From contig JAAOMT010000009.1 of the NCBI GenBank assembly GCA_016748015.1, positions 81,861-140,700 of the forward strand: a stretch of DNA of 58,840 bases, read 5' to 3'. Positions 1,167 to 58,232 of this stretch are shown piece by piece (the stretch's first letter is position 1; the number at the start of each line of letters is the position of its first letter). The notes under the pieces were generated by a model. That model did no database searches. It saw only the letters and a list, made by a program, of their open reading frames with translations, and was not told where the DNA came from. The position numbers were made by a program, and so were the translations under genes. The stretch comes from Geosiphon pyriformis uo1. Its lineage: Eukaryota; Fungi; Glomeromycota.

Positions 1167-4135
1167 ATAAATAATACCTGTGTTTTGATTGATACTACCT
1201 GCCCCTTGATTATTACCACCACTTTGGGTATTGCCCCCATCACTGCCTGGATTGCCATCAGGGCCTGGTTTACCATCAGCACCTGGTTTACCATCAGAAC
1301 CGTTAGCACCTGGCTGGCCGTCAACCCCGTTAGCACCTGGTTTGCCGTCAGCCCCGTTAGCACCTGGTTTGCCGTCAGCCCCGTTAGCACCTGGTTTGCC
1401 GTCAGGACCTGGATTGCCATCAGAACCTGGTTTACCGTCTCCACCTGGTTTGCCGTCAGTGCCGTTAGTACCATCAATGCCGTTAGTGCCGTTAGTACCG
1501 TTAGTACCGTTAGTACCGTCAGTGCCGTTAGTACCATCAATGCCGTTTGTACCGTTAGTACCGTCAGTGCCGTTAGTACCGTTAGTACCATCAGTACCAT
1601 TAGCACCTTGAGGGCCTTTATCTCCTTGGGGACCCTTGTCTCCTTGGGGACCTTTATCACCTGGTTTGCCGTCAGCGCCATTAGTACCGTCAGTGCCGTT
1701 TGTACCGTTAGTACCGTCAGTGCCGTTAGTACCATCAATGCCGTTTGTACCGTTAGTACCGTCAGTGCCGTTAGTACCATCAATGCCGTTTGTACCGTTA
1801 GTACCGTCAGTGCCGTTNNNNNNNNNNNNNNNNNNNNNNNNNNNNNNNNNNNNNNNNNNNNNNNNNNNNNNNNNNNNNNNNNNNNNNNNNNNNNNNNNNN
1901 NNNNNNNNNNNNNNNNNNNNNNNNNNNNNNNNNNNNNNNNNNNNNNNNNNNNNNNNNNNNNNNNNNNNNNNNNNNNNNNNNNNNNNNNNNNNNNNNNNNN
2001 NNNNNNNNNNNNNNNNNNNNNNNNNNNNNNNNNNNNNNNNNNNNNNNNNNNNNNNNNNNNNNNNNNNNNNNNNNNNNNNNNNNNNNNNNNNNNNNNNNNN
2101 NNNNNNNNNNNNNNNNNNNNNNNNNNNNNNNNNNACCTTTATCACCTGGTTTGCCGTCAGCGCCATTAGTACCGTCAGTGCCGTTAGTACCGTTAGTACC
2201 GTCAGTGCCGTTAGTACCATCAATGCCGTTAGTACCGTTAGTACCGTCAGTGCCGTTAGTACCGTTAGTACCATCAGTACCATTAGCACCTTGAGGGCCT
2301 TTATCTCCTTGGGGACCCTTGTCTCCTTGGGGACCTTTATCACCTGGTTTGCCGTCAGCGCCGTTAGTACCGTCAGTGCCGTTAGTACCGTTAGTACCGT
2401 CAGTGCCGTTTGTACCGTTAGTACCGTCAGTGCCGTTAGTACCATCAATGCCGTTTGTACCGTTAGTACCGTCAGTGCCATTAGTACCGTCAGTACCATC
2501 AGTACCATTAGCACCTTGAGGGCCTTTGTCTCCTTGAACACCTTTATCACCTGGTTTGCCGTCAGCGCCATTAGTACCGTCAGTGCCGTTAGTACCATCA
2601 ATGCCGTTTGTACCGTTAGTACCGTCAGTGCCGTTTGTACCGTTAGTACCATCAGTACCATTAGCACCCTGAGGGCCTTTATCTCCTTGGGGACCCTTGT
2701 CTCCTTGGGGACCTTTGTCTCCTTGGGGACCCTTGTCTCCTTGAACACCTTTATCACCTGGTTTGCCGTCAGCGCCATTAGTACCGTCAGTGCCGTTAGT
2801 ACCGTTAGTACCGTCAGTGCCATTAGTACCGTCAGTACCATCAGTACCATTAGCACCTTGAGGGCCTTTATCTCCTTGGGGACCCTTGTCTCCTTGAACA
2901 CCTTTATCACCTGGTTTGCCGTCAGCGCCATTAGTACCGTCAGTGCCGTTAGTACCATCAATGCCGTTATTACCGTTAGTACCGTTAGTACCGTCAGTGC
3001 CGTTAGTACCGTTAGTACCATCATTACCATTAGCACCTTGAGGACCCTTGTCTCCTTGAGCACCTTTATCACCTGGTTTGCCGTCAGCGCCGTTATTACC
3101 GTTAGTACCATCAGTACCATTAGCACCTTTAGGACCCTTGTCTCCTTGAGCACCTTTATCACCTGGTTTGCCGTCAGCGCCATTAGTACCGTCAGTGCCG
3201 TTAGTACCATCAATGCCGTTTGTACCGTTAGTACCATCATTACCATTAGCACCTTTAGGACCCTTATCTCCTTGGGGACCTTTGTCTCCTTGAACACCTT
3301 TATCACCTGGTTTGCCGTCAGCGCCATTAGTACCGTCAGTGCCGTTAGTACCATCAGTACCATTAGCACCTTGAGGACCCTTGTCTCCTTGAGCACCTTT
3401 ATCACCTGGTTTGCCGTCAGTGCCGTTAGTACCATCAATGCCGTTATTACCGTTAGTACCGTTAGTACCGTCAGTGCCGTTAGTACCATTAGTACCATCA
3501 GTACCATTAGCACCTTGAGGACCCTTGTCTCCTTGGACACCTTTATCACCTGGTTTGCCGTCAGCGCCGTTATTACCGTTAGTACCGTCAGTTCCGTTAG
3601 TACCATTAGTACCATTACCTCCTTGAGGACCCTTGTCTCCTTGAGCACCTTTATCACCTGGTTTGCCGTCAGTGCCGTTTGTACCGTTAGTACCATCAGT
3701 ACCAATAGCACCTTGAGGACCCTTGTCTCCTTGAACACCTTTATCACCTGGTTTGCCGTCAGCACCGTTAGTACCATTTATGCCATTAGTACCGTTAGTA
3801 CCGTTTTTACCGTCAGTGCCATTAGTACCATTAGTACCATCAGTACCATTAGCACCTTGAGGGCCTTTATCTCCTTGAGGGCCTTTATCTCCTTGGGGAC
3901 CTTTGTCACCAGTAATGGCTTTGTCTACGCCTCTTTTCCAATATCGTTTTTCCTTTAAAGAAATGGTATCTATACTATTAATTCCCTTGACTTCACGTTT
4001 GCTAATGATTGATGTGGTATCTAATTTTGTAAATGGTCTGGCTTTGAGGATTACGGGTATAGTTAGTGTCAAACTCAATAAAAATATGAAGGATCGGCCA
4101 TTGCAAAGGTAACTTTTTTTTTTGGCCATTTTCAT
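1167..4135 (-). CDS. Secreted collagen-like (Gly-X-Y) protein A; prepro leader plus very long repeat body; 3' partial and interrupted by gap 1818-2134
   Basis: First ATG at 4135 (the track's 4183 start is TTG). [32 protein letters not shown] looks like a signal peptide, and the propeptide has KR sites (ISKR, EKR, YWKR ending 3932). About 197 uninterrupted Gly-X-Y triplets run 3910-2135. After the gap, the correct frame reads ...GANGSDGKPGADGKPGPDGNPGSDGGNTQSGGNNQGAGSINQNTGIIY to 1167. TATAAAAAG lies 94 nt upstream. Confidence 0.88.
1818..2134. other. Assembly gap (others at 1147-1166, 18643-19066, 19439-20083)
   Basis: Runs of N. Confidence 1.
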
Positions 4136-5184
4136 GCAATTTAAATGTTTTAATATATAAATTAGCTGTTTCAAATTTCTCAAAGGTGAGATAATAGTTT
4201 TTCAATTACAAAATTCTTGGCTTTTTATAAAGAATTTTTTAATAAGAGACCCCACCATAAAACGAACAAATTTTATTTTGACAAAAATCTTTCTTCGAGA
4301 TTTTTCTTTACATTTAATTAACCTTAAAGGTACTGTTAGTTTCAATAAATTAAAATTTATCAAAATAGAACTCAATTAAGATTTTATATTTTATATTTGT
4401 TGCATTAAAACGTAAGATCTGCAAATGGTAAGTCCTCAAACCGGTAAATGGGATATCTTTATTGTTGACTGCAAATTCTAAAAACTAATTCAACTCTTTT
4501 CTCGGGAAAATTTATTTGTACAATTAAGGTAAGATACTTGAATAAAAAAAGTAATATTTCATTATCGAGCATCTAATTTTAAGGTTTTAGACAGGTAAGC
4601 TGGATTTCGTCATAGATGCCACGTTTTCAGAACACTAGAATTTCTAGCTTCGAATCCAGATATTTGTAATACAAAGTAATAAAAAAACATTGATTATTTG
4701 AAGCCATTTTTCCAAAGACGTTCAAATTTTGCCAATTTTCATTTGAGAATGGGAAGTATTACCTAAATTATATCGTCAACTAAAAGTTTTTTTATTTAAT
4801 TAATAAATTTGATAATATATTGAACGGTAAAAGTTGAAATTCCTTATTAAAGTCCCATCAGGCTTAATAATAACCAAATGAATTAAAAGTACTGTGAAGC
4901 CGTTATTTTCATTTATTTGACAATATTTTGTCATAAGTTACACAGAGAGCGTTTTTGACTTGAAAGAATCAAATTAATGGGAAATAGTCAATTCCCGGTT
5001 TTAGAAAGGGGGCATGGAAAAACACACTGATGATATTGGTTCGTTGCGTTTTATGAATACGTATTGTGATTAATTGGTTACGCACACGTATCGTAATTAA
5101 TTTTTATTGTAGGAATTTTCTTCTACATTTGACTTAAAAGCCGAAAAATAAAATCAATTCAAGTTTTACTAAATATGAAAATAT
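3932..5184 (-). repeat. Left arm of ~1.25 kb inverted segmental duplication (upstream region plus prepro leader of collagen-like gene A)
   Basis: The reverse complement aligns by eye with 56911-58232, e.g. 5041-5184 with 56911-57054 and the leader coding sequence, with a few indels. Confidence 0.93.
4221..4229 (-). promoter_or_regulatory. TATA box of collagen-like gene A (TATAAAAAG)
   Basis: 94 nt upstream of ATG 4135; conserved at the same distance in the paralog (57938). Confidence 0.65.
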
Positions 5185-5199
5185 TTATGATTTTTTGCC

Positions 5200-8100
5200 A
5201 ATAATTTTGCAATAAACTGTATTTATTAAAATCATATCAATAACAAAATAAAAAATTCATTTATTAATTTTAACATTATTAATTTTACTTTATTTTGATA
5301 TTAAAAAATATTATTTTGATATTGTAAAAAATTATAATTATAAAATATATATATACCAAAATTTTTACCTAACAATTCATGTTAAACTTTTTATTTTGAA
5401 TCTTTATTTTCATAATAATTGTTTAAAAGTTACAAATGAAATATATAAATTAAAATATATGTATTAAGTTTTTTAATTTCTTTGTTAAAATAATAATAAA
5501 TTTATTATTTATCAATAAATCAATAATAAATTGCAGACTTTCATACTCTCAGAACTATACTTATTAGAAAATATTTTACAGTAATTAAAATTCAAATATT
5601 GTCTTTTAGAAAAATTAAAAAGTTCTATTATATACAACTTTTTCTCTTTTATATTTTTATGATCACAATTAAAAAAAAAAAGCTATTGTTTTTAATAGCT
5701 TCAAAATTTACAAAGTCTTTTTAAAAGTAAAAAAACTAAAAAGCACTTTTTTAAAGCATTCTTCTTAAGAATAAAAACACAAAACAGTATTTAGCTGTTA
5801 AAAAAGCACTTTTTTTAGCTTCAAGTAGAGTTTTCTTTATTTATAATTTTTTTAAGCAACTAACTAAGATCAGTTTTACTGTAATTGATACTATAATAAA
5901 AAGTTGTAATTACTTTTGAGCCACTTTTTTTATCTTTGCTTAAATGGCCAAAAAAGTTAAAAAACAATTTTTTTTCTTCTTTAAAAATACTGTTGCTAGT
6001 TTTTTAAGATATTTAAAAAAAGTATTTTTCATAGTACTTTTAAAGCATTATTTTTAATTTCTTCTTTTGTAAAAAATAAAATTTTTTTTAGTTTTTTTGT
6101 TGTTTTTACTAATTTTATTGCAACTGTATTAATTAAATGTTTTATCTCAATCTGGCTGTAAACAATAATTTCCTTTTTATTTTAGATAATAATCGTAATA
6201 ACATATTTGTCAAAATTAATTCAAATTAGTACATGATTGAATTGCTTAATATATTAAATTTTAATTAATTTTTGCTAGTTTTAAAAGCAAAGCAAATTAT
6301 GTTTTTATGTGCAACTTTAATAAATTAACTTATTAAATTACTTAATTTTAAAGATTAAATTAATAAAATAAAAACTAAACCATTTTTTTTTCTGTTTTCT
6401 AAAAAAAATTACTGGTTTTGGATGTTTAAAACAGTTATTAGTTATTAAAAATATTTTGAATTTGTGGTTTCTGTTGTTATATTTGGTGGTTTTGCTAAAA
6501 TTAAAATAATTTATGTAAAGACTATGTTTTATTCTATATTTGGTTTTATTAGTATAAAGTTGATTGCTAAAAACAATATTAGATTTTTTGGTAAGATTCT
6601 TAGTATTAAGTTAAAGTTTATATGTCTTTGGCAACATATTATAAATCAATTCAAATATTCTAAAAAATTTTAATCTTATTTTTGCTTACTCGTTTGTTCT
6701 GATAAAAAAAACAGTGTTTGGTTTTTTCTAGTTTTGTGTTAAAAAAAGTTAATTGTTTTTTAAAATACTTTCAAATCAGTTAATTAACTTTTTATTAAAT
6801 TGTATTCTCTTTAAAATTAGTAATATAATTGTTAAAAAATGCAGTAAAGCATGGTAAATTTTAACTATTATTAAAAAGAGGTTGTTGTTATATTCAAGTT
6901 TTTAATAATAATATTACCAAAACTGATATTTTAAAAATTGTTATTTTTAATATAAAATCTTTGAATATTGTTATTGTTATAAATATCCAGTTTAAATTAT
7001 TTGGTTTTAAACTATAAACCTGTTTTTTGTGTTCTTTTAAAGTTTTTTTTAAAAAATTATGTTTTATTCAAGATTTTTTTAATTGGTTTACTGGTTTAAT
7101 ATTATATATTAAAACTACTGATTTAATAGAGCTTATTGAGTCTTTAGTAATCACAATTGCTTTTTTTAATACTAAAAAAGTCTTAAATAAGATTATTAAT
7201 GCTAAATTTATTTTATAATAATTTATATTACTTATTTTAATAATTTAATTGGTAGTTTAATAAAAATTTTGCCAAATATAAGAGAAATTGTAATATGTAT
7301 AAATTTAATAATAATAATAATAAAGATAAAGTAAAAAAACTTTTATTATATAAAAATACAGTAAAAAAAATTTTGTTTTTTTAAAATTTAGCAAAAAGTT
7401 TATCAATGTTTAGTTAAGTAAATTTGTTTATATTTTTATTAAAATTAACTTTATTGTTAGTAAAATGATTGCTAGAAAGTTATTTGCAGTTTTTAATTTA
7501 GTTTAGCGTAGTTTAACTTAAGTTTTAATAATAAATTGTGTATAAAAAGCATGTAAATTACATTTAACATTAACTTTTAACAGTTATAGTTAATTTAATA
7601 ATAGAATTATGCTTAATTAAAGCATATAAATAAATAATATTAACATTTGAAAAATATTTCAAATTTTTAATTTTGTTTTAATTATTCAATTAATTTTGAT
7701 TTTTAAATAATATTATAAATAAGTAATAGTTGGCTTTAAAAATTAGTGTTTTTATTGGTGTTAAAATACTTGGTATTGGTTTGTTTGAATTAAAACATTC
7801 GGTTTTTGCTGACATACATAGTAGGTTGAAATGTTTTTCTTGTGTAGTCGATTTTGTGGCTCAGACTTTTGTGCATAATAGGTTTGATATTGTATTTAAC
7901 ATGATATAGTACAGTTTTAACTGGCTTGAGTGGCTGGTTACATGTTAAAAATACGTAATTTGCAGCTGTTTGTAGGATGTTATTATTTTTTGTTTTAGTT
8001 AATAAATAAACTACACTTTATTACAGCATAATAAAATTAATAAATAAACAAATAATAATAATAATAATATTTAAATGTTTTATAAAAAAAATTCAATCTA

Positions 8101-10330
8101 TTAAATCAAAATATTAGATTAGTTGAATTTTTTTTAAAGATTTGTTTTTAAAAATAATAATTTTTATTATGTTTTAATAAAGTATAATTTTTTTCAAACT
8201 TATTTTAATTTCTATATAAAGTTAAATTATAATTTAAATTAGGTATTTTTTATATATTACCAATTATTTAGACTTATGTTAAAATTATATTAGGTTAACA
8301 TAAAAAACAAAAAATCTTAATTTATTTAAAATAATTTAAATTATTAATTTTAAAACAAATTTATCTAATCAAAGAATAATTTTTTTAACATTAAATTTAA
8401 ACATTTAAAATCAATATTATTTATATTAGAAAACCTTTTTATAACAAAAAACTTTTTACTATTTATGTTATTATAATCTATTATTATATATTTTTATAAT
8501 ATTAACAAAAAACTTAATTTAATTTTTTACAAAAGAAAACCAGATTTTTATTTTATTATTAAATTTATTTTTAATAATTAGCAAATATATAATAAATATT
8601 ACTAAAAAGTTAATAAAATTAGCAATAAATTTATTAATTAAACAGATTTCAAATTTGGACTTTTAATAAAACTAAATTTATTATTAAATATTAAAAAAAC
8701 AGCAATTTAACATAATTATTAAATTAATTAACTATTTTACAAAAAATTTTAACACAACAAAAAACTATATAATTAAAAGCAAATAATTCAAATTTTAACA
8801 TTTATAACAAAATTAATACTTAAAATTTTTTTATTAAATATAACATTTTTTTAAAATATTAATCTTAATAATAGTAACATTAAAAGTTTTTTTGAAGTTA
8901 AATTAACAATAACATATTTTTATTAATAATTAAACTTAAAAATTTAAAGAATAAAACAAGTTTAACTATACATATTAGCAATTATATTATTAATCTTAAA
9001 AACAATATAATTAAACAAGAACAGTTTTAAAAACTTTAAAAAATTTAAAATATACAATAAAACATTATTACAAATTAGCGAATTTTAAATTAATATTATT
9101 AATAAAAATGCTCAAAAAAATTTATAAAAGACTATAACAATAAGAAACAAAATTTACAGAAAATTTAACAATTTAACTTAAAAAATTTTTGATAATTAAT
9201 AATTGTTTTAAAATAATATTAAAATTAATGTTTAATTTTTATTTTATTAATTCAATAATATAATTAAATAAAGTTATATGTTAAAACATAACTTGTTTTA
9301 TTTCTAAAATTGGCAATAATTAACCAGAATTTATTTTATTAAACAATATAGTTAATTGTTAATTCAAGTCAAATTTGTTAAATATGTTATTGTCGCTATT
9401 ATTGAAATAAGAAAAAAATTATCGTTTATAGCCAAAAAGAATTAAGCATTAGTATTAATATAATAAAACTGGTAATAACACCAAAAAAACCAGAAAAAGC
9501 CAATGTTTTTTTTTAAAAAAATTGCTTCTAAATTGCTTTGGTCTTTTTAATTATTTAAACAATAATAGTTTGGCTACTATTTTTGATTGTAAGTTTTTGG
9601 GCTTTTAATAATAATAATAATAGTAACATTAGGATTACTTCTAATAAACCACTTTAAAAAAACTTTGCAAAAAAAAAGTTTCATTTAAAAACAAAATTAG
9701 TGCTTTTTTAGCAGTTAAAAACTGTTCTCTTTTTTTATTATTTAAGAAAAGTATCTTTAAAAAGTACTGTTTAGCTGTTTTTATTGTTAGAAGGACTTTT
9801 TGAATAGCTGTATTGTTAGAAACTACAGAAAAAATATAAGTCGCTTGTTTTTTTACTTTAAGTACAGTTATAAGAAAAAGGATTATATTATTTTTGCTTT
9901 TTTGTTTATTAAATAATATCTGTAAGTTTTTAATTTATTATTCAATAAAAAAACACATATAATCAAATTTGAAATACAAAAATATTAACTTAATTATTAT
10001 TAACAGTATCTTTATTTTAATATATAATTTATTATTTCATTCATAAAAAATAAATAAAGAAAAATCTAAATTTTAAAAACAAGTTTTTAAATGAAATAAC
10101 AATTTTAAATTTAATTAACTAAATAAATAATTGATTATTGGCATAACTAATTTTACATTACAATATAAACAGAAATCTGAATTTTGTAATTTTTTTTGAT
10201 ACATAAACAATACAATCAACTTTGATTTTTTTGTTTAAATTATTTTTTATTGTTTATTATTTGGTTTTTGTTGATAGAATTTTTATTTTTCTTATTGATA
10301 CACAATTAACATATGGATTTTATGTTACAA
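5200..10330. mobile_element. Heavily AT-decayed element with long diverged inverted termini; family unassigned
   Basis: 5711-5810 matches the reverse complement of ~9699-9800 (aaagtcttt...aagcactttt...ttcttaa...aacagt...ctgttaaaaaagcact). Weaker inverted matches: ~5520-5545 with ~9919-9942, and ~5235-5258 with ~10278-10300. CpG is nearly absent and there is no intact ORF. Boundaries are approximate. Confidence 0.45.
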
Positions 10331-10769: not shown

Positions 10770-11620
10770 AGTCACTCGATAATCAACTCGCAACGCTGCA
10801 ACATTGAATTTACTAAATTTATTAACATAGGTTTGACAAAGAATTCTATTCTTCAGTCATATGTCGTTCCAAGTTATCCACATTTTGTGGCATTTTTTTT
10901 TCTACTTCACGTTTAAAAATTGCCCACAGATTCTCAATAGGATTTAGATCCAGACTACACAACGGCCAGTCAATGACTTCAGGTACATTTTCCACAAGAA
11001 ACGCCTTAGATACTTGATTTGCATGCTTTGGAATTTTTATATTGTTGAAAGTGACACTTTTTCCCAAGTATTCCATTAACTTTTCCAACATGTTGTTTCA
11101 AAATTTTAATATCAAATTTAGCATCCATGATATGTCAAAACAAAATAAGCTGATATTTCTCTTCATAAAAAAACCACCCCACATTAAAATTTTTGTAAGC
11201 TGTTTTGGTGTTGGAAGAATTGGCTATTTTTCCTTGTATCAACGGTCAATTATGTTTGGAAACAGTTGAAATGTTGTTTCATCGAAAATAAGGTTTTTTT
11301 CCTGTTCTCATTAAGATAAAATTTGGGCCATTTAACACGTTTCTGCTTTTGAATTTTTTGCATGAGCATTGTCATAGTAATTGGTAGGCTTTTCATTATG
11401 CAAGTAATTTTAAATGTTTGCCAATTGTGCGATATAAAATTTTTACTCCATCTGTATCTAATTTAGTAGCATTTTTTTGCAAAGACAACGAATTTTTATG
11501 AACATATTGAATTTACTTTTCTTGATATATGTCCTATAATTTTCTTATGGTAACTATTACCGCCTTTGTTGTTAATTTTCTCAACGTTTTTGACATTGCA
11601 TCATACAATTAAGATAAGTA
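10770..11620 (-). pseudogene. Tc1/mariner-type DDE transposase relic
   Basis: Minus-strand remnants in the expected order: IF-DETTFQLF (~11260-11295), VWGGF (~11170-11185) and IDWPLCSLDLNPIENLWAIFKREV (degenerate WPxxSPDLNPIENLW, ORF 10846-11091). Frameshifts and stops throughout. Confidence 0.8.
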
Positions 11621-12900
11621 GATTAGTGATTATACTTAATTTTAGAGCGAAAAATTCACCCTCACACCAAAAGGAGATCAGCTTTTGCTTAGTACATTTT
11701 TTGACCAACAGATTCATTTCTAAATGTGAATTATAAATAAAGCTGCGAATTAATTTTATGCAGCCTATCGCATTGAACCTTACTTGATTTGGATTATATG
11801 TAATAATTTTTGTCAGGTGATTTTCAGATACACACTTTATATGAAAAACTGAAAAAGTAAAAATTTAATTGGTTTCACATTTTTTATAAAGGCGTTTTGA
11901 ACTATAAGGATAATCAAAATTTTGTTTTGTTTGCTGCATATATTTGTTATTAATATTATATTTCTATTGAATATTGGACATTGCGTGATTTTGAAATAAT
12001 TCAATTTTGTATTCAGAAATTATTTCAATATTTTCGCCATTTAATTTGATTTGATGTCTTTTTACAAATCAATATTGGTAAGGTATGTACTGTGAATCCC
12101 ATTTTTTCCAAATAATTTTAAATCTTTTCAACAATATTTTTTTGAAATTTTTGCATAATTTAAATATTGTTATTATTTCGACAGTTATAATTTAATCAAT
12201 ATTTATCATTGTAATTGAAATATATCTCTATTAACTGAAGAAAAATAATGTGAAAAAACAAATAGCAAATTAATAGCAAATTATTTATTTATTAATATTG
12301 AATCTTGACTGGAAAAAATTTGTATTTTTAATTATTCTTTTGGGTCAATTTGAAACTAGGAATAAATAAAATTAAATTCAGTTTAAGCAGAGTTCATTTA
12401 ACGACAAATAATTTAAAAATTTTGGCATATACAGCTTCTAAATCAAAATTAAAGACAAATATTTAATTCTTTTAAAGTCAGACGTGTTTAAAATTGTTTA
12501 AAAATCAAATCTTATCTCAGTTAATAGCTAAAAAAAAATTAAAATAGGAAAAATAAATTTCATTGTACCACAAACCATGAAAAAAATGTACTTTTTATGT
12601 TTGAAATTATATTTTTTATATCGAAATTTATAAAATTAAATATTTAAGTATATATAAAATTTAATGATAATAACCAAAAATTTATAAAAAAAAAACTAAT
12701 TTCAAAAAAAATTGATTAGAAAATTAAAAGTCAAAATTTATTTTTTAATTAATAAATCTTTAAATTATAAAATAAATTAATTTAAATATTTTATTACCCA
12801 AAAACTAAAATAATAATATTTGAATAATTTTTTTTTTTTAAAAAATTAAACAAGTTAAGCATAAAAGCATAGAAAAAAAATCTTTTTATTTTACAAATAT

Positions 12901-12923
12901 ATAATAATAACAATAACAATAAC

Positions 12924-38500: not shown

Positions 38501-38503
38501 TAT

Positions 38504-39037
38504 TGCTATAGTTGAATCTTTTACTTTTTAACTTTAATATTTTTACTTAATTATAATTAATTATATATATTAACTATTAATATTATTAATTAACTATTCT
38601 ATTTTTAGAATTAGTCATAAATATAATTATTAATCTAATTATTGACTTAATTATTAATTTAATTATTAACCAAATTATTAATATAATTAATTAATTTTTT
38701 TGTAAGAATATATAAGTAAGACTCTTTGAAATTATAAAAAAGTATTTATACTTAAATTATATTTAAATTAATATAAAAATATTAATTTTTTATTTTTTTT
38801 ACTATTTTTTTCTTGATTTATATAATTATTTACTAAAAAAATACAATTGATATCTAATATTGAATTTTAAAAATACTAATATAAAACAAATTTTTTATTT
38901 TCAGATTTTTTTGTTATATTTTAAAAAAATAGCTACTAAAATATTTATAAAATTAATCTTACATATTGAATTCTTACTAATTTAATTTATTTTTTAAAGT
39001 TAAATTATATTTTTGATTATTTTTTTACTATATAATT
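38504..39037 (+). repeat. 5' LTR
   Basis: Begins TGCTATAGTTGAATCTTTTACTTTTTAAC and aligns with 44279-44702; differences are mostly transitions. The 3' end is approximate. Confidence 0.75.
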
Positions 39038-42000: not shown

Positions 42001-44278
42001 TTTCTTTGAATTGGTTTTTTATTATTAAAAATTTATCAAAAACTTCTCCAAAATTGCATATTTTTTTAATTAACTTTTATAAAAAATATTAATTACTACT
42101 AAAATATTTTTTAACAAAAAGTATTTGAAACTTTTAAAAAAAAAACTAATTACTAAACCTATTTTAAAACAATTTAACTTTAAAAAGTCATTTATTTTTT
42201 ATACTAATAATTCTAATGTTTTTTTGGTGTTATTTTATCTTAAAAAAATAAAAAAAAGAATATATCATGATTTATAATAATAAAACTTTAAAATAAACAG
42301 AAAAAAATTATACAGTTATTAAAGAAAAATGCTTAAAAATAATATAATCTACTAATTATTAGAACAATTATCTTATAAAAAAAAATTTAATATCTATATT
42401 AATTATTAAATTTTAGTTTGATTAAAAAACAAAAAAAACTAAATCACAAAAAACTTTTCTGTTGAATTATATATTTAAATAAATTTAATTATAATATTAA
42501 ATATTACAAAAAACAAGGAATCAAAATACAAATGTTTTATTTTAATTAGTTGCTTAATAAAATAAATAGATTAACAACATTAATTAATTTAATTATTAAT
42601 AAAAATTTTAAATTAACAATAATAATAGACTTAAAATATTATTTAATATTTATCTAATTTTTAAATAAAAGATAATATTTATCCAAATATAATTAATAAC
42701 AAAAAAAATATTTGCAAAAACAATTATATTTTTATTTAATCTGCCAGAATTAATTATATTAAAAAACTAAAAAAATCTTGATCAATTATAAAGAGTTATC
42801 TAATTTAAAAAAATATATATAATATATAATATATATATTGATTTTTTAATAAACTATTTTGGAAAAACAAAAACTATTCAAAAAACATTTACTCTATATC
42901 TGTTGATTAATTTTTTAACAAAATTGGAATTAATATTATTAAAATATTAATAGTAATTTTCAATAGAAATAGATATATTATAATAACAATTGATTATCTA
43001 ACAAAATAGATAAACGTTAAAGCAATTTTAAATTAAACTGCTATTTTAAATGGCAATTTTATTTACAAGAAAATTATATGTAAACATAAATATTCTTAAA
43101 AAATATTTTTAAATAGAAAAAAGTTTTTTTAACTTATTAGTAAAAAAAGTATTCATAAACCAATAAATTAATAAAATATTTTAATTGAACACTTTGTAAA
43201 TCTTTAACAAAAACCAGTAAAAAAACAAACTTATAAAACAAAGTTTATCTTAAGTTTTTTTTTTTTATAATAAAAACTTAAAACAATATTAGATTTTTTG
43301 GTAAAAACATAAATAATAGTTTATAAAAAAATAAAAACATTTTAAGAAAAGCCTAAGAAAAAAAAAACATATAAAACACTTTTTTTAAATATTGGTAGTT
43401 TAGTTCTTAAATACAAATTAAACTAAAACAATATTTTTGATAACAAATTTTTAAGTTTATTAAAAAAACTATTTATAATTAACAAAATATTAAACAACAA
43501 ATCTTATATTTTACAAAACCAATATAGAATAATATTAATAATCAATTTATTTATAGTACATAAATTAAAAAATATTACAAAAAACCTGATTGGTTATAAA
43601 TTATTATAATACTTATAATATTTATCAATAAAACATCAAAACAACTATAAGAAAAATTATTAGTTTTAAAACAGATATATTTTTTATTAACATAAAAAAA
43701 TATTTTTCTTACAATTTACAAATATTAAACAAAAAACTATTTAGATATTTTATTTATTATTGAAAAACAAATAATAATTGGAAACAAAACTAAAGTATAT
43801 TTTATTATTAATTTATAAAAAACTGTTACAAAAAGACAAAAAATTGACAGTAAAATAAAAAAGCATATGTTTAAGTATAACTGCTAAAATACTTAATTCT
43901 TTTAATATAGTTAAAAAAATAATAAAAAAAATTTTGCCTATAGACCAAAATTGTCATATAAAAAACAGCTTAAAAGTTATAAAAAACTTAATAAAGTTAT
44001 TAAAAATATAAAGTTTTTAAAAAAAATAACATTAGAAATTTAAGTAAAAATCTTAAATATTATATGTTTAAATATTTTAAAAATTTTAACTATTGCAAAA
44101 AAAGCCAAAATATTTGTATAAAAGTTTAGTCTTTTGGATTCAAAACTAATATTGTTGTAACTTTTTTATACTTTGTTAGTTAAAAATTTTAACAAATTAG
44201 TTAACTTTAAGATAAAAATTTCAGAACTTTTTTTACATAATTTTATTTTGCTAAAGCTTAATTTTTTAAAAAAAATAA

Positions 44279-44702
44279 TATTATAGTTAAATTTTTTACT
44301 TTTTAACTTTTATATTTTATTTGGTTATAATTAGTCATATATATTAGCTATTGATATTATTAATTAATTATTTTATTTTTAAAATTAGTTATTAATCTAA
44401 TTAGTAATTTGATTATTGATCTGATTATTGACTAAATTATTGATGTAATTATTATTTTAATTATTGATTTTTTTGTAAAAATATATAAATAAAGTTATAA
44501 AAAAACATTTATATTCGAATTATATTCTAATTAATATAATAATATCAACTTTTTTTATTTTTTTTTTACTATAATTTTTCTCTTTTCTTTTTTTAATTTG
44601 TATAATTATTAGTCTTTGTAAATTATATTTATGAAATTAATTTTGCATATTAAATTTTTACTAATTCAAATTATTTTTTAATTATTTCATTACTATATAA
44701 TA
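44279..44702 (+). repeat. 3' LTR, with a ~100 bp internal deletion relative to the 5' LTR and a decayed 12-bp tandem array at ~44410-44470
   Basis: Begins TATTATAGTTAAATTTTTTACTTTTTAAC (TG>TA) and ends ...CTATATAATA (CA>TA). Confidence 0.75.
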
Positions 44703-45737
44703 CTGTTTTTTTTGCTATCTATTAGCTTGTTAATTAAACTATAATAAGATAAATTTAAGTAAAAAAAAGTGGTTTAGTTGACAATAATAAGCTTTTATCT
44801 TATATATTATATAATATATTAGTCAAGTTTTTAGGTTATATAATACATATAATTAAAATTGCTAAAGTTTTATTAGTTAATTTTGGTTTGTGTAAATATT
44901 ATTCTTTTTTTCAAATTTAGACAGTAATATAGTTTTAATTAATTTAAATAACTAATTATATAAAAAAAATATATAAATTATATTTAATTAAAAATATTTA
45001 GTTTGTTTTTATATATTAAATAGCAATTAAATCTTATTAATTAAATTATAATAAAAAAAATAAATTAAAAACCCAATTTTTATAAAATTATAATTAATTC
45101 AAAATTTTTAATTTTAAAAAATGTTAATTTGTTAAAAAAATTTAATTTAAAATTATTTTTAAATCAATTTTTTAATGTTTTTTATTATTAGTTTTTATTT
45201 TTCTTATTTTTAATTAAATTTTTATTTTTTTTATTTTTAATTAAAGTTTAAAGTAAAATTTTAATACTTATAATTCTAAATTTATTATATAATAATTTAT
45301 TAAAAATTAAGTTTAATTGTCAAATTTTAAAGTTTTTAATAATTTAATTTAATTATTAACTATTTATATATTAAGTTTATTAATAATAAACAAAAATATA
45401 ACAAATTAATAAGTTTAGCATATAAAAAAACTAATCAATCAAGTTAATGTCATATTTTAAAAAAAATATTTTAATAAATATTTTAACAAGCATTTATATT
45501 AGTGCTAATAGTAAAAAGTTTTTTATTAATTTTTTTTCAAAATACAAGTTTTAATATTATAATTACATATTTTTAACAACAATTAAAATTAGAAACCAAA
45601 AAGTAAAACAAGTTTAAATATATATATAGCCAATTATATTACTAATTTTTAAATTGTACAGCCAGAAAAAAGCTGACCAATTTGGTTTTAAAAATAATTT
45701 TAAAGTAATAGGATTATTATTATCTTTTTCTTCTTCT

Positions 45738-45739
<2 letters not shown>

Positions 45740-45780
<41 letters not shown>
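45740..45780. repeat. (TTA)n microsatellite
   Basis: Directly visible. Confidence 0.85.
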
Positions 45781-45785
<5 letters not shown>

Positions 45786-47300
45786 GTAAAAAAAATCTTA
45801 ATACTTTTTTTTTTTTACAAAAGTTAAACAGTAATTAAGAGTAATGCAATATTGTCTTAAACCAACAGATTTAACTTGACATCTATAATCTTACTAAATA
45901 CTTCAAAAATGCTTTTAATATTATTAAAAATGTACTAAAAAAAACTTTTAAAAAGTGCAATAACAGCAAAAAATTAATTTAAACATTACAACAAATTTTG
46001 CAATTTTTAGTGTATTGAAAAAAGTGATTTAGCAAGCTGAATTTTGAAAAGTATTTTATTTTTAATATATAACAATACTATTTTAATTTAAATATGTTTT
46101 TTTTTTAATTAATTTATTTTAATTGGTTCACATAAGCTGATTAAGCTATATAATAAAATTTTTTAAAATAATTTACTCAAAACTTTAAGAATTAATTGCA
46201 ATTTTAAAGTCAAGTATTCTTAAGTGTTAGATTAAAAATAAATGATACACTATTAATTTTAAATTATCACCAATATCCATTTCTTCAAAGTTTTGTTTAT
46301 TTTTTTCATACATACATAGGCAAAATTATGTCACTAAAGTCTAAACACATTTGAGTTTACAAAAAAAAATTTTAAAATCGCAAAATATTTTTAGTTCGGG
46401 AATTTCCTTTAAATCTTGAATTAAAGAATAAGTTGATTAAAAATCTAAAGTCAATCACTAAAAAATGTTCACATGAAAATTTGAAGATTTCTTAAATAAT
46501 TTTTAGGATTGAAAACTCACCTTTAAATTAGTTTATTAAGATTATTTTAGCGATATCTACATTGTTTTCACAATATCAAGTCAAATATATAAAAAGCTTT
46601 ACCAAATTTTATTTTTATTTTTTTTATTGAGTTTTAAATTCTTCCCGTCTTTTCAAAAACACTATTTCTATGTTAAAAACCTCAGAAAGAACTTGAATAA
46701 TTTGGTATATTCTTTAAAATATTCTTGATACTAATCTCAATATTCGAAATGATTAAATCAGAAATATAGCTTTTTTTGATTTCTTCTTTAAATCAACCCA
46801 AGATATATGAAATTTTTTTAATATAAATCTTGAGATTATTAATTTCTTTAAATCTGCATGCAAAATCTTTTAAAATATTTTTGAGTTTTAAAACCACATT
46901 AGTTGACTAGTTTCACTTTTTGCTTCGAACATTTCTTGCACAAATAGCGTTAAATCTATCTTCAAGGTTTTTAGATGAAAAATTTTGAGCTAGTAAAATA
47001 CAAAATGCATTTTATTTTCCTATAAAAGGCTAGTTGATTATTTTGAAAATTCTACAGGCGTTAAAAAACATTCGAATTTCAAAGTTTTCTTTGAAAATAT
47101 AATTTTATTTTTTTCAAAAACCTTCGCTTTTGGCACTAAAAGATCAAAATTTTTCTTCGTGCTCACCATTACCAGGGTAATATTTGAGAAAATGCAAAAG
47201 TTTAAAACGATTAATATTTCTAAAGTGTAATACGTTTTAAATCAAAATCACTTGCTACAACTTTGAAAATTGCAGTATAAAGGACCATAATCCCCGTTCT

Positions 47301-48072: not shown

Positions 48073-48144
<72 letters not shown>

Positions 48145-48831: not shown

Positions 48832-48839
48832 TATAAAAG
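48832..48839 (+). promoter_or_regulatory. TATA box (TATAAAAG) of the Asn/Gly-repeat secreted protein gene
   Basis: 103 nt upstream of ATG 48935. Confidence 0.55.
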
Positions 48840-48934
48840 GAATCTTTATTCTCGTTTCCAAAGTCTTGAGCAAAAGTTTCTCTACAAATCAATCCTTTTT
48901 TTTTCCTTAAAAGAACTTCACAAAGATTCACTTC

Positions 48935-49366
48935 ATGTACTCTAAAATTTTCACCTTTTCAGGCCTAGCCTGCCTTTTACTCTTGGCTATCTCGTTCACT
49001 ATGGCCGAATCAAAAATTTTTAAACGGTCCAGACTTGAAGTCCGTGGAGATTATAATGGAAATGGTAACGGCAACAATAATATTGGTGATTACAATGGAA
49101 ACCTCAATGGCAACGACAATAAAGGTGATTATAACGGAAATTTTAACGGCAACTATAATATTGGTGATTTCAATGGAAACCTCAATGGCAACGAAAATAA
49201 AGGTGATTATAACGGAAATTATAACGGCAACGATAATTTTGGTGATTTCAATGGAAACCTCAATGGCAACCAAAATATAGGTGATTTCAATGGAAACTTT
49301 AATGGCAACGAAAATGATGGGAAATATAAAAATTATAGAAATGACTATAATAATTACAATTGGTAA
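48935..49366 (+). CDS. Small secreted Asn/Gly-rich tandem-repeat protein (7 x 13 aa GD[YF]NGN[LFYG]NGNxNx), 143 aa
   Basis: ATG start, hydrophobic signal peptide (FTFSGLACLLLLAISFTMA), KR at 30-31, 39-nt repeats at 49046-49318 with synonymous variation, and an upstream TATA. Confidence 0.88.
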   Translation: MYSKIFTFSGLACLLLLAISFTMAESKIFKRSRLEVRGDYNGNGNGNNNIGDYNGNLNGNDNKGDYNGNFNGNYNIGDFNGNLNGNENKGDYNGNYNGNDNFGDFNGNLNGNQNIGDFNGNFNGNENDGKYKNYRNDYNNYNW

Positions 49367-49729
49367 CTTCAGTGGCAAAAAGAATCAAGAAATGCTTGTA
49401 TTTAGAATCAGTGTTTCTTTAGTCTAAGTAAATTACAAAGTTTCATTTTTAAAATTTACTTTTTTTTTTATTCTTTTTGAAAGTTTTATTTTTTAGCATT
49501 AAAATAAAAGGTCATTTTTTTTAATATTCAGTCGATGGAAAAGATTACCAAAAAAAATTTAATATTAAGTACAGACGGGTCACGATTTCCTCAAAATCGT
49601 AATACTAACAACCTTAAAATTGCACTTGGGTGATTTTTGTTCATAACAAAAGACATTCATCTTTACTTAATTAAAAGCAACTTAAAAGTTCGAAATGTAT
49701 ACACAAATTAGTTGTCATAAAAGATCTTA

Positions 49730-50740
49730 ATAAAACGAATGTTATACGGTAAAAATGCTCAAGAAAGAAGTTGTGTCCCCGGTAAAAATTGCAGGCACTA
49801 TTGACGATCCGTTACTTGTGTTAAAAATTAGCTTCAACGATCAGAATTAACAAAAGATGGTGTTTATTTAAAAGAAATAATAGTAGTTGAAAATATATTG
49901 TTGATAAAAGTTGTGAACGTTGAATTCAAAAAAAAAATCTGGATGCCAAAACATCTGCTTGCTGTCGAAGAAATCTCATCTAAAACCCAAATTTTTGTTT
50001 CCACTCGTACTTAATGAAAACTCAAAAAAAAACCAATATTAAATCTTATATAATACATAAGAAACCCAATTATTAATAAAGTAAATCAAATCAAATCAAA
50101 TCAAATCAAATCAAATCAAATCAAACAGTTAATGTGGGGCTAAAACCTACAAGCATTAAATCAAAGAGGATTCACCACATGTTCTTGGCACAGTAGAAAA
50201 CTATATATATAAGCACTGATTAATATGGAAAATTTCGTGTATGCTGTCATAAAAATAAGCATGTATAACTCTGATCATACATGAGCAAACGTCAAAAGTG
50301 TACCTAGATCTATTATGGTATGGGTACGTATTAGCGGTCAATATTTGAATCATTTGATTCATACCTCTTCACGTATGACTGGTGAAGCATATGGAAATCT
50401 TAAATTTAGATATAGTTTATCCAATGATTATGATTGGTGAAAAAGTAAAATTTCATTCAAATTCACAAGTGTAAAGCTTGTGAATAACTCCAGGATAATA
50501 TTTGAAATTGTGACTTTGTAATTGCCTCCACAATCGCCAGATCTTGATCAAATAGAAATATGTGGAAGGAAGTTAAAAAAATGGATTCATCAAAATCAAA
50601 AGCTACGAACAGAAGCTGACTTGGAGGAGGCAGTCTTTTACTGTGTGGAACGTAATTCCGTAAGAAACAATTCTTTAATTTTATTAACTCGATGTCAAAA
50701 CTTGTTAAAGAAGTTATAAAAAGAAAGATTTATGGGACCT
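49730..50740 (+). pseudogene. Tc1/mariner-type transposase relic
   Basis: IMVW(G)xIS remnant at ~50312-50336 and PPQSPDLDQIE..KLKK (ORF 50522-50719, cf. WPPQSPDLNPIE). Interrupted by (AAATC)n at 50083-50124 and by frameshifts. Confidence 0.7.
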
Positions 50741-52972: not shown

Positions 52973-53740
52973 TCAATAATAATTACAAAAAATTGCAGGA
53001 GGTTGTTTATGACCAATAAATTCAATCTTAACTAAATTATAATTAGGATTTTGGTAGGTATCCAATATTTCCTCGTATGTCCCAGAATTTTCAAGATTGA
53101 AAAAAGATGATTCACAACCAGGTTCAGAAAGCCTCAAGAAAGATTGATCTTGGTCAAAATCAGTAGGCCATTGTGAAAGTGTTGAAGGTGCTGTAGAAAA
53201 TGGATGAGCTTCCGGATAATAAAAGTTGTTCTTATATTGGTTCGTTGTGGATGCATAATGAAGATCAGTTCTTCCATTGGCTGTTGAGGAGTTTTCATGA
53301 GAAACAGGTGCTTCAATATGATTTAAGCCATCGATAAGATCCAAAGTTCCGTCTATTTGAGATTTTTGAGCAATTTGAAGTTGAACGATGTGCAAAGGAA
53401 ATAGAGAAGCAGCAAATCTTCTATATTGATCTAGAGCTTTCCTACTCAAATTATGGTAAAAACTCTTTACACGTTGTGGCTCTTTTCTCCATGCATTTGC
53501 AGCCATGCTCGAAAGGTCGTGCATTCTTTTATATCGCTTCTCATTAGAATATTGCTTTCTTATTGCCATTCGATATGCAAGGAAAGCATTAGAAATCTTT
53601 GATAGTTTCCCTGTTTTCTTTAATCTTTCAATGGCTTTCCCGATTAGATCTTCGGGGCATAGATCTGGTGGAAATGATGGTTTCCGAAATTCCGCTGTAA
53701 CAACATCGCTATCAACGTTTAACTCAGATGTTTCCACCAT
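52973..53740 (-). CDS. MATA-type HMG-box transcription factor, 255 aa
   Basis: KPSFPP..PEDLI N-flank, then HMG helices SNAFLAYR / MHDLSSMAANAWRKEP / VKSFYHNLSRKA, then an acidic Ser/Thr-rich tail. This layout is typical of the expanded MATA-HMG family of arbuscular mycorrhizal fungi. TATAAGA lies 97 nt upstream (53837-53831). Confidence 0.88.
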   Translation of the reverse strand: MVETSELNVDSDVVTAEFRKPSFPPDLCPEDLIGKAIERLKKTGKLSKISNAFLAYRMAIRKQYSNEKRYKRMHDLSSMAANAWRKEPQRVKSFYHNLSRKALDQYRRFAASLFPLHIVQLQIAQKSQIDGTLDLIDGLNHIEAPVSHENSSTANGRTDLHYASTTNQYKNNFYYPEAHPFSTAPSTLSQWPTDFDQDQSFLRLSEPGCESSFFNLENSGTYEEILDTYQNPNYNLVKIEFIGHKQPPAIFCNYY

Positions 53741-54633: not shown

Positions 54634-54676
54634 GGGGGGGGGGGGGGGGGGGGGGAGGGAAGGAAGGGAGAGGAGG
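54634..54676 (+). repeat. G22 homopolymer plus polypurine tail
   Basis: Directly visible. Confidence 0.85.
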
Positions 54677-56910
54677 ATATCAAATTTAAAGCTCAAGAAT
54701 AGATGTACCTAATATTCTGATTGGATAGTGTTTTAAAGTTGAAATTTTTTTAAATTTCGAACAGAATTTCTAGCATACTACTTTTAATTTTCATTTACGA
54801 AAATATTAGCTCTTTATTTCTATCATGTGTCATTTGTTGCAATTTTGAATTTTGAAAAAAATTGATTCAATAATACATGTATTAAATAATTCTCATACCA
54901 AATTGAGAATTTAGGCTCCTATTGTATTAAAGAAATCTCATGTTTTTTTTAATGTCAGATAAGAGATACTTATCATAGATTGAGTAACTCCATCAATTTT
55001 TATAGAATAAAACTTTTTGAGATTAAAAAATGTCCAATAACCGAAAAAAGATGAGAAATCAAACTTTTTCATTCAAGAATGGCCATGTTTTAACAAAAAA
55101 CGGAACTTTCAAATTTTCAATGAATGTCGGAATGACCATGTTTGGTTTCAATCAAGCATATATTTATCTTGTTATTTTGAACTTTTTAATAATATTTAAG
55201 TTTGATTCAAATATCCAAGATAAAGTTCACCAAGTCCTTTTATAGATTGGCTGGATTTAGCTTTTCCATCAAGCTGAGCCCGAGTCAGCCATTATTATTG
55301 AAGACGAGTTACATTTTTTCGTAGAATGGCAATGTACCCAAGCTTTAAAGGCTTTTTGCGAAGTAGTGCGATGTAACGTCGACGGGAAAGCGGATACCAG
55401 TTAGTTTTGCAATTCCGGTTGCATTACGGTAATATTTGCCTCAAAGTACTAAATAAAAGTACTAAATGACTTCACGGTTTGATTTTACGAGTAGCAGAAG
55501 GAATAAATGAGAGGTTGCGTGACATCAAACCAAAAATAACATTTATCAGTATTGCACCCTTGGAAGAAATATATGATAGATGAAACTAATAAAATCGAAA
55601 AATAAATGATGAAAGTGGGTCGTGAAACTATTCTTTTAATAATTAATAAAGTGGGAAAGAAATTTGAAAGTTGAACTCATTGATAAAGCTGTTTTGAGAC
55701 AAGCCAAAGCTAATAATTATTAAAGGTTGATTTGATTTAGCTCGACTGGGCTCTTGCCGATCTTTAGATAACACCATTCCAAAAAGGAATATACTTTTGA
55801 TTTGATATAACATGTCTTATGTAAGATTTCATTTTAATCAATATTGATATTTGCCAAATAAAACTAATTAACCGAAAATAACAACAATTGTAAAAATGGA
55901 ATTGATCTTTTATTAACTCCAAATCGGGTGAATTTTGTTGAATCTCAAAAAATTATGCTTACTTCAGATAGAGAAATCTTCTAATTGGTTTAGTGTGAAA
56001 ACTACCCAAAATTTAATTTTTATTAAATATGGTTAATCAACTCGACTCAAATTTAAACTTTTGGCCCAGAAGTCTATTCTCACAAAAACTTTTCCATTCC
56101 AAGTTTAGAACTATAGTTTGCTCCATCCTGATAACCTTGAAAAGTTTCTTAATTATTTTTTAGGAATGTTCATTGTTGGCAAGCGTATTTTTTAACTTTT
56201 CAAAAAGAATTATTTTGGCAAAGAAATTAATTTTATCACGTAAAAACAGAACAATTCCATTTTTGATGTTTGTTTTTACATAAAAACTTGGAATTATCTG
56301 AAAAAAGCTGTAGCCTTTTCAGTAATAATTTAATTAATTCCCAGGATTATCTGAGCTATTTTCTTTTACAACAAAGATAATTTTTTTTCAGAGAACAGGA
56401 GTAAAGAAAATGGAAGGCAAAAAGAGAAATTAAAAATAATTTCTGAATATCTTACTTTTAAAATAAAGTTTAATTGATTCTAAATAAACTAGAAAATTAC
56501 CTTGTGCATTTCAAGGGTTATGAGGTGTGATTGCTATTCATCCAAAGCAATCATCAAAGCAATTTAAAAGAAAAATTTATATGAAAAAAGAAATCGAATT
56601 ACAATTTTTGCAGCTTTTCAAAGAATTCCCGCTTAAAGCATGGTAGAAAGGATTTCTTTGATGGATTTCGAGGAAACATACACGATGTGAAATTTTCAAT
56701 CGTTCAAACATCAAAATATAAGTTTTTTAACATATTATATCTTTAATAGACAATAATACCATCTTTTTCCCTCATAAACAAAAGTAGCTAAACGCAGAAA
56801 TTGAAGATCCTAAATGAAAGAAAAAATTAAGAAAAGGAAATTTGTTGATATTTGTTTTGGTTGCAAAAATGAAAGACTAATTCCTTGATGGAAGATAACA
56901 TCTTCATTCT

Positions 56911-58232
56911 ATATCTTCATATTTAGTAAAACTTGAATTAATTTTATTTTTCGGCTTTGAAGTCAAATGTAGAAGAAAATTCCTACAATAAAAATTAATT
57001 ACGATACGTGTGCGTAACGAATTAATCACAATACGTATTCATAAAACGCAACGGACCAACATCATCAGTGTATTTTTCCATGACCCGGGAATTGACTATT
57101 TCCCATTAATTTGATTCTTTGAAGTCAAGAACGCTCTCTGTGTAACTTAAGACAAATATTGTCAAATAAATGAAAATAACGGCTTCACAGTACTTTTAAT
57201 TCATTTGGCTATTATTAAGCCTGATGGAATTTTAATGAGGAATTTCAACTTTTACTGTTCAAATATATTATCAAATTCATTAATTGTATAAGAAAAATTT
57301 TGGTTCACGAAGCGAACATATGTAAAAATTGATATAATATTGGTCGAAATTCGAACGTCTTTGGGAAAATGGCTTCAAATAATTATTGTTTTTTTTTATT
57401 ACCTTGTATTACAAATATCTGGATTTGAAAATATTTTTAGTGCCTGATATGGGACTGTCACTCAATCTTTAGGTTAACCTTTTTAGTCCTAGAAATTCTA
57501 GTGTGGAATTCAAATGTTTTTTTCCTTTTTCCCTGGAAATGTAACATCTATGACGAAATCCAGCTTTCCTGTTTAAAACCTTAAAATTAGATGCTCGATA
57601 ATGAAATATTTCTTTTTTTTGTTAATAATATACTTCAAAATGTACCTAGCACTTTTTGTCAAGTATTTTCACCTTGATTGTACAAGTAATTTTTCCCGAG
57701 AAAAATTGCTTGAATTAGTTTTAGAATTTGCAGTCAACAACAAAGATATTCCATTACGTTTTAATACATCAAATATAAAAAAAATCTTAATTGAGTTTCT
57801 ATTTTGATAAATTTAAATTTTTTGAAACAAACATTACCTTTAGGTTCAACACATGTAAAGGAAAATCTTTCTTAGAGATTTTTGTCAAAATAAAATTTGT
57901 TCGTTGTGGTGGTGGGATCTCTTATTATAAAATTCTCTATAAAAAGCCAAGGGTTTTGTAATTCAAAAACTTTTATCTCACCTTTGAGGAATTTGAAACA
58001 GCTGATTTATATATTAAAACTTTTAAATTGCATGAAAATGGCCAAGAGAAAAAGTTACCTCTGCAATGGCCGGTCATTCATATTTTTATTGAGTTTGACA
58101 TTAACTATACCTGTAATCCTCAAAGCGAGACCATTTACAAAATTAGATGCCACATCAATCCTCAGACGTGAAGTCGGGCAAATTAATAGTATAGATGCCG
58201 TTCCTTTTAAGGCAAAACAATACTGGAAAAGA
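56911..58232 (+). repeat. Right arm of the inverted segmental duplication (upstream region plus prepro leader of collagen-like gene B)
   Basis: Reverse-complement match to 3932-5184; carries extra sequence around 57430-57540. Confidence 0.93.
57938..57946 (+). promoter_or_regulatory. TATA box of collagen-like gene B (TATAAAAAG)
   Basis: 94 nt upstream of ATG 58032; same motif and spacing as in gene A. Confidence 0.65.

Follow-up and report, generated by a model that had tools for sequence, protein, structure and literature searches.

The AGL/IDP proteins of Glomeromycotina (RiAGL1-5; Schultz et al., 2022, PMC8786786) are secreted, Gly/Pro-rich tandem-repeat proteins whose genes are clustered and hard to assemble. 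They have conserved signal and glycosylphosphatidylinositol ends (83-91% identical) around divergent mature repeats (42-61%), and contain zwitterionic units that include ADGK. Here we compare with these and other systems a pair of collagen-like secreted-protein genes, A and B, in a 58,840-nucleotide (nt) stretch of the Geosiphon pyriformis genome (the window, whose position 1 is position 81,861 of the contig). Gene A lies on the minus strand at the left end of the window and gene B on the plus strand at the right end, in two inverted arms. An earlier note on this DNA had read them as a reusable promoter-leader cassette carrying exchanged cargoes; we instead think it likely that they descend from a single duplication of an 8-9 kb block, accompanied by inversion and circular permutation, and that the repeats then diverged.

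AGLs are at most 200 amino acids (aa) long, are mostly over 70% Pro, Gly and Ala (P+G+A) in Rhizophagus, and carry next to no N-glycan sites; an intron marks their signal boundary (PMC8786786). Gene A, in contrast, has more than 1100 aa assembled, strict Gly-X-Y, 43% P+G+A, a Kex2 pro-region and ~106 N-glycosylation sequons, and no intron interrupts the frame between its leader and the Gly repeats. Visible B has 66% P+G+A and no Ala, and both proteins exceed the lower P+G+A limit for AGLs, 40%, only through Gly. Because size, introns and sequons all disagree, A and B are not AGLs. They are not KEX2-processed repeat proteins (KEPs) either: in KEPs (PMC6339444) and many RIC-like proteins, KR lies between repeats and peptides are released, whereas no KR- or RR-separated repeats were found in A or B. 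Geosiphon RIC1-3 and related Gly/Asn-rich KR proteins (PMC8786786) share with them a signal peptide and a short pro-region ending in KR; the genome encodes at least 18 Gly/Asn-rich proteins with signal and KR, some with leaders ending in an aromatic-rich KR, and one such gene is a passenger in each arm of this locus.

Among collagen-like proteins, the bacterial and viral ones (PF01391; the GPT stalks of Bacillus BclA/BclB) resemble A and B in exceeding the Pfam Collagen cut-off and in their Thr-rich, hydroxyproline-independent triplets, and the Atlas clusters nearest to B are BclB-related (score 0.84, a lead only). Unlike them, A and B have a eukaryotic prepro leader and no visible trimerisation domain, and the matches are compositional (mostly 32-56% local identity); composition would be the only argument for horizontal transfer from bacteria. 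MCL1 of Metarhizium, described as a fungal collagen-like surface coat protein (PMC7341153), is alike in being collagen-like by sequence and is a plausible functional model, compared here by description only. Spidroin paralogs (PMC9779670) are unrelated in sequence and provide an analogy of evolutionary mode only: they combine conserved termini and flanks with fast-diverging, internally homogenised repeats and intergenic conversion. Conserved ends with divergent repeats are a pattern already known from AGLs and spidroins, and no new diversification mechanism is shown here. In a limited literature search we found no description of collagen-like secreted proteins in Glomeromycotina.

Arms, flanks and block edges

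Local alignment of the two arms, from 5184 to 3932 (minus strand) against 56911 to 58232 (plus strand), gave 1090 matches, 94 mismatches and 207 gap columns, or 92% identity over ungapped columns. The alignment terminates at the last base of the Arg codon of a YWKR motif, and beyond this KR 5/30 and 12/60 nt are identical, which is background; both results agree with the earlier note, which had described inverted copies whose similarity stops right after YWKR. The ~1.05 kb upstream of gene A (4136..5184, minus strand) differs by 8% substitutions plus indels from its aligned counterpart upstream of gene B (56911..58031, plus strand). An identical TATA element was correctly placed at -94 in both copies (4229-4221 and 57938), although TATA-like words occur ~4 times per kb in this AT-rich window.

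The leaders also fit their earlier description, as 67-68 aa long with one difference in the first 39 residues. That of A has 68 aa (3932..4135, minus strand; from translation and hydropathy), with dibasic sites at 46-47 (KR) and 67-68 (the end of YWKR); that of B has 67 aa (58032..58232, plus strand), with RR at 45-46 and YWKR at 64-67; the single difference is K6R. Of the two candidate starts, Met1 and Met3, the latter has the better context. Gene A's leader has a basic n-region, a hydrophobic core at about residues 16-30 and a predicted signal cleavage near A32, and the hydrophobic core (Kyte-Doolittle peak 2.5, a heuristic hydropathy measure), together with purifying selection, identifies a signal peptide for the endoplasmic reticulum (ER). 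The sole plausible GT-AG intron in the pro-region (49 nt) was rejected on inspection, as it would leave the Gly frame. Searches with copy B (58032-58298 and 58032-58838; the copies are ~90% alike), by word index and by HMMER, turned up no credible homologue of the leader among 5.8 billion proteins (in a search limited by length) or among 1.84 billion. Two HMMER leader matches, to a bacterial-type CUB/BACON protein and an aphid repeat protein, were discarded as artefacts of summed repeat scores.

Selection divides the leader in two. Codons 1-32 carry 7 synonymous changes and 1 non-synonymous change (proportions of synonymous and non-synonymous differences, pS 0.34 and pN 0.013), and codons 33-68 carry 1 synonymous and 14 non-synonymous changes plus a codon indel (pS 0.045, pN 0.17), a significant contrast (p=2e-4). 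The signal region is held by purifying selection; the 14:1 ratio in the pro-region is not significant as positive selection (p=0.17). Identity at the nt level is 93% over codons 1-39 and 82% over codons 40-68, a stretch more diverged than the flanks with their 8% (p=0.003). The first dibasic site is KR in one copy and RR in the other. Since YWKR is unchanged while 6/8 of the codons just before it changed their amino acid, it is probably under purifying selection too. The alignment would stop at KR because selection holds no non-repeat sequence past this point: only 7 residues in A and 14 in B follow before the repeats begin. The earlier note had proposed that homology fading gradually far from KR would speak against it: the alignment does end at KR, but over the last 90 nt ahead of it identity is already down to 82%, from 93%. 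Its broader picture of a pair of secreted, Gly-rich and probably Kex2-processed repeat proteins, with a conserved expression and export front end and very different visible mature regions, holds, and is supported by the selection on the signal region and by a gene for a Kex2-type P-domain in the genome.

Homology does not end with the leader. In a self-comparison covering 97.6 kb around the window, it resumes past both edge gaps, between C701:80455-77849 (minus strand) and C701:143786-146671 (plus strand), where C701 denotes the same scaffold in its own numbering. These 3′ flanks are homologous over at least 2.6 kb in the same relative orientation, with 2389/2520 ungapped columns (95%) identical. 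The flank of copy A runs beyond the left gap from C701:80455 down to 77791 (minus strand); that of copy B occupies C701:142459-146684 (L004:2660-6885, plus strand), with homology to A's flank from L004:3987. Beside B lies an intact passenger, a Gly/Asn-rich secreted-type gene of 355 aa (L004:5010-6077); beside A lies a Gly/Asn-rich KR-type pseudogene of it (~C701:79570-78585) that has lost its start codon and acquired stops and frameshifts.

The edges of the blocks preserve a trace of how they were joined. Block B opens at its 5′ edge with a 25-nt motif (56887..56911, plus strand) that recurs with 22/25 matches at the 3′ edge of block A (C701:77815-77791), so that the order is motif-promoter-gene-flank in B and promoter-gene-flank-motif in A. 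The motif, searched as a pattern made from both copies, has two copies in 128 Mb; a reversed control gave one match, and it is therefore the position of the motif that counts. Even when ample slack is allowed, chance would produce this placement with a probability below 6e-4. A 3-nt microhomology (GAT) stands at either end of block B, and the blocks, gaps included, are ~7.9 kb (B) and ~9.3 kb (A) long. Reversed block order with microhomology at the junctions is a sign of duplication through a circular intermediate (PMC7450558); segmental duplications of that kind are alike in showing only junction microhomology, and unlike in that the permuted piece here is only 22-25 nt. With so short a piece, donor and acceptor are indistinguishable. 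A reading of the junctions as showing B to be the parent was dropped, as both directions fit; only the intact state of its passenger gene speaks, weakly, for B as the parent.

Mature regions, processing and fold

The scaffold is of short-read type, with six gaps in and around the locus, and the mature regions are seen in pieces. Gene A contains internal gaps at 1818-2134 (317 N) and 1147-1166 (20 N). Just outside the window each gene runs into a further gap, of 1405 N on the left (A) and 1758 N on the right (B). The stop codon and C-terminus of each gene lie outside the assembled sequence, and no continuation of gene A's tail was found elsewhere in the assembly. The earlier gene description was sound for promoter and leader, but overlooked the two extra gaps in gene A and both edge gaps. 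About 1.2 kb is unassembled in both copies (an estimate of 2571 from A's tail to its flank, minus 1327 of B's flank), and near-identical 3′ ends would explain why neither C-terminus was assembled. Further gaps at 18.6-20.1 kb, between the arms, bear on arm spacing and relative orientation only. The promoter-leader-KR junctions of A and B are both gap-free, with unique flanks.

Piece 1 of gene A (2135..3931, minus strand) consists of a 7-aa stub and 197 uninterrupted Gly-X-Y triplets up to the gap (Pfam Collagen, 311 bits), mainly GTN (55), GDK (32), GTD (31), GPQ (19) and GKP (12), which bears out the GTN/GTD/GDK/GPQ repeats reported previously. Its modules combine a 12-residue charged block (GKP/GDK/GPQ) with a GTN/GTD/GID block. 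Piece 2 (1167..1817, minus strand) has 65 triplets followed by a short non-repeat tail cut by the 20-N gap; from 1463 it contains a separate GKP/GAD/GNP/GPD block with two units shared with B (1423-1408 and 1261-1246). Piece 3 (1..1146, minus strand), between the 20-N and 1405-N gaps, has 127 triplets of the same modules and exact matches of up to 275 nt with piece 2. The three pieces have no dovetail overlaps that would fix their order. The 20-N gap divides piece 3 from gene A's non-repeat tail; its order looks wrong, and it was probably misplaced by the scaffolder and belongs upstream of 1817. Gene A has at least 667 contiguous aa, and the three pieces together give ~1190 assembled mature residues and 389 triplets. 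A search with A's mature region returned only compositional collagen-like matches, mostly metagenomic, and no named fungal orthologue.

Gene B begins its mature region with a 14-aa non-repeat cap that holds the first Cys, followed by 15 Gly-run blocks divided by NE/DE (58233..58655, plus strand), and continues as (GPT)n over at least 20 triplets (58656..58840, plus strand), with a GPD-GNP unit at 58785-58801 after which GPT units resume. More than 269 aa are visible. The architecture of acidic cap, poly-Gly/NE and (GPT)n is as the earlier note had it, except that the second Cys assigned to the cap sits inside a degenerate Gly block. In the genome scan B scores 32.9 bits for Pfam Collagen with its neighbours, above the cut-off of 27.2, and falls below it in an hmmscan of the 269-aa piece. 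Both genes have long unbroken Gly-X-Y runs of the PF01391 type: 197, 65 and 127 triplets in A and at least 20 in B.

Kex2 cleaves after KR or RR. The genome has one PF01483 locus over cut-off, a gene for a Kex2-type P-domain, and both leaders have two dibasic sites, the sequence features of a Kex2 proprotein. The mature regions of A and B, as far as assembled, contain no Arg, and the dibasic sites are confined to the leaders, so each precursor should release one long chain. The proteins would enter the ER, be cleaved by Kex2 at the two dibasic sites and be released as long, hydrophilic Gly-X-Y chains, which may act as extracellular wall or matrix glycoproteins. Gene A's product may form a segmented rod or brush in which GDK/GPQ blocks can make Lys-Asp bridges and the Pro-free GTN/GTD blocks are probably labile; that of B would have a poly-Gly head, acidic and flexible, and below it a stalk of (GPT)n whose triple helix would need O-glycosylated Thr. 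Lys-to-Asp pairs are known to stabilise triple helices, and Gly-Pro-Thr peptides fold only with glycosylated Thr (PMC11923368).

We lean towards extracellular wall or matrix glycofibres with stalks that are probably at least partly triple-helical. A serious but less probable alternative is that these are disordered or polyproline-II Gly-rich matrix chains of AGL/IDP type that form no triple helix, which would be compatible with the same duplication history. Gene A is only ~5.6% Pro, lacks KGD/KGE triplets and is dense in N-glycan sequons, and its modules repeat ADGK, also present in the RiAGL1 repeat APADGK (PMC8786786), all of which suit disorder. A disordered chain would not, however, be expected to keep Gly at every third position unbroken over 197, 65 and 127 triplets composed of 47 codon units, nor to have 31 Lys(Y)-to-Asp i+5 pairs of the triple-helix-stabilising kind (PMC11923368). 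Weighing against the triple helix, AlphaFold monomer models of the mature parts are uninformative (predicted local distance difference test, pLDDT, 36 and 41, both <45, as disorder would give), so that the helix is read from the sequence; a single-chain AlphaFold model, for its part, cannot represent a trimer. No trimerisation or anchoring domain was found at the N-termini of A and B; the C-termini lie in the gaps.

Relationship of the cargoes and rival histories

The longest match between the two mature regions is 17 nt, in a GPD-GNP unit (GPDGNPG) whose codons occur twice in A's late block and once in B. Its 16-nt core has 3 occurrences in the 128-Mb genome, 2 in A and 1 in B, and shuffles keeping codon or triplet content produced a shared run of at least 17 nt in 12/1000 and 8/1000 cases for a unit chosen post hoc. 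We suggest from this that the cargoes of A and B are related. Outside the repeats, identity is a mosaic, with a 258-nt identical tract beside A's gap (p ~2e-6 at 5% divergence) and a promoter patch near 72% of columns, a pattern suggestive of gene conversion in patches or, for some of it, of collapsed repeats.

The history we favour would begin with a block holding two genes for secreted proteins: an intronless prepro collagen-like gene, with 1 kb of promoter ahead of it and its 3′ flank behind, and a Gly/Asn-rich neighbour. A single duplication would have placed a copy at an inverted site on the same scaffold; the permuted edge is observed, and a circular intermediate or an equivalent template switch is its probable route. 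Slippage, unequal exchange and the loss or gain of blocks would then have remodelled the repeat interiors, leaving different units at the N-terminal end of each mature chain and the late GPD-GNP unit in both, and gene conversion may have patchily re-homogenised the flanks, as the 258-nt tract suggests.

Several points weigh against this history. Each 3′ flank is joined to its gene only across a scaffold gap, the 258-nt tract could partly be a collapsed-repeat artefact, and the test of the shared unit was selected after the motif had been noticed. Only one 9-nt unit type is common to the visible mature regions, which have 10 types (B) and 47 (A), a large turnover for a flank divergence of 5-8%. 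To explain it, repeats must have evolved very fast, the ancestor must have been composite, or conversion must have refreshed the flanks.

The near-disjoint unit sets keep alive an unlikely variant in which an N-terminal block was lost or gained next to KR. Here the ancestor was composite, and B reads leader, cap, poly-Gly and GPT followed by A-type modules and the same tail, hidden in its gap; A would have lost the N-terminal block, in frame and from right behind KR, or B would have gained it, which makes this a special case of the duplication history with a true breakpoint beside KR. The abrupt loss of similarity after KR fits this, as do the ~1.2 kb unassembled in both copies and the GPD-GNP among B's last visible triplets, a unit that in A is confined to the late block. 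The gap-flanked 1146-nt piece at 1-1146 would fit the 1758-N gap and might belong there, but it equals A's other pieces exactly over 131-275 nt, too alike for paralogs 5-8% apart unless converted, and B goes back to GPT after GPD-GNP. Less probable still is a replacement of the N-terminal mature block of A and B by recombination next to the Kex2 site, yielding two co-expressed surface fibres, giant collagen-like glycofibres specific to the Geosiphon pyriformis lineage and different in chemistry, an N-glycan brush and an acidic poly-Gly head on an O-glycosylated stalk, for the bladder wall or for Nostoc capture.

The cassette of the earlier note, in which a promoter-prepro unit is reused and unrelated collagen-like cargo is captured or exchanged by recombination at YWKR, we regard as very improbable. 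In its favour, the alignment ends exactly at the Arg codon, the visible mature regions are unalignable, and upstream non-coding DNA diverges by 8% against 19% at leader synonymous sites, which could reflect promoter constraint. The cassette would nonetheless require a second exchange point before the shared 3′ flank, where homology resumes; the cargoes share a rare unit, the block edges indicate duplication of the whole block, and identity decays before KR. The modular family expected by the note did not materialise. Leader DNA and leader peptide each find 2 copies in the whole genome (an assembly of 128.3 Mb in 792 pieces, in which all copy counts are lower bounds), and Pfam Collagen exceeds its cut-off at these two genomic loci only, so there is no family and no donor in the genome. 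A third Pfam Collagen match (C595) proved to be a purine-rich microsatellite. Homology confined to promoter and leader, several copies or a donor, and unrelated cargoes, the marks of a leader cassette, are all missing here; the assembly has no donor or third copy, and the leader has no homologue among 1.84 billion representatives.

That the arms are alleles, one locus assembled twice or a misjoin at the KR junctions is highly improbable. The short-read type of the scaffold, its six gaps, the 258-nt identical tract and a probably misplaced piece would suit such an artefact, but substitutions amount to 5-8% between the arms, indels are numerous (up to ~97 nt per 150 columns), homology ends at defined edges with unrelated DNA beyond, and both KR junctions are gap-free with copies 18% different just before them.

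Neighbouring sequences and significance

RIC-like Gly/Asn-rich genes with signal and KR lie at window 48935-49366 (plus strand), L004:5010-6077, L006:4783-5514 and L051-L068; three intact genes and one pseudogene surround the locus and at least 18 more are found elsewhere, many with KR between repeats. Those looked up had no exact record in the protein collection. Two MATA-HMG-type genes (window 52976-53740, minus strand, and L007:2-859) stand one near each arm, outside the duplicated block, and the HMG-box protein of the window groups with Mucoromycota MATA-HMG clusters (score 0.95). Between the arms, open frames of 146 and 393 aa (window 21343-21783 and 22751-23932, plus strand) are probably exons, with no Pfam match at E 0.01.

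Relics of Tc1/mariner-type transposases occur at window 10779-11656 and 50466-50729, at L005:4317-4610 and at L006 ~7800-8500; DDE_3 was confirmed in the L005 relic, and the copy at 10.8-11.7 kb has a 70% direct match ~65 kb rightward, in L006. A decayed TnpB/Fanzor-like fragment at L006:2956-3346 (C701 ~152.6-153.0 kb) retains a Cas12f1-like TNB zinc ribbon (E 6e-4, below cut-off). A degenerate inverted repeat (~70%, in three pieces) at window 5706-7113 and 8677-9805, directly upstream of block A, may represent old DNA transposon ends. Window 31000-46000 is a 15-kb block of 11% GC without coding signal, whose two halves are oppositely skewed in GC and which contains a 160-nt repeat (38541, 44315); it is possibly a mutationally decayed element or centromere-like DNA.

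Two orphan proteins, collagen-like and secreted, join the still short list of surface-repeat proteins from Glomeromycotina. The locus is also a compact case of fast replacement of a repeat interior: the flanks are 92-95% identical, the visible repeats are unalignable, and the junctions of the duplication can still be read. Geosiphon pyriformis is, to our knowledge, the only fungus known to host a cyanobacterial endosymbiont; if the two genes are expressed in its bladders, their products would be candidates for the interface between host and cyanobacterium.

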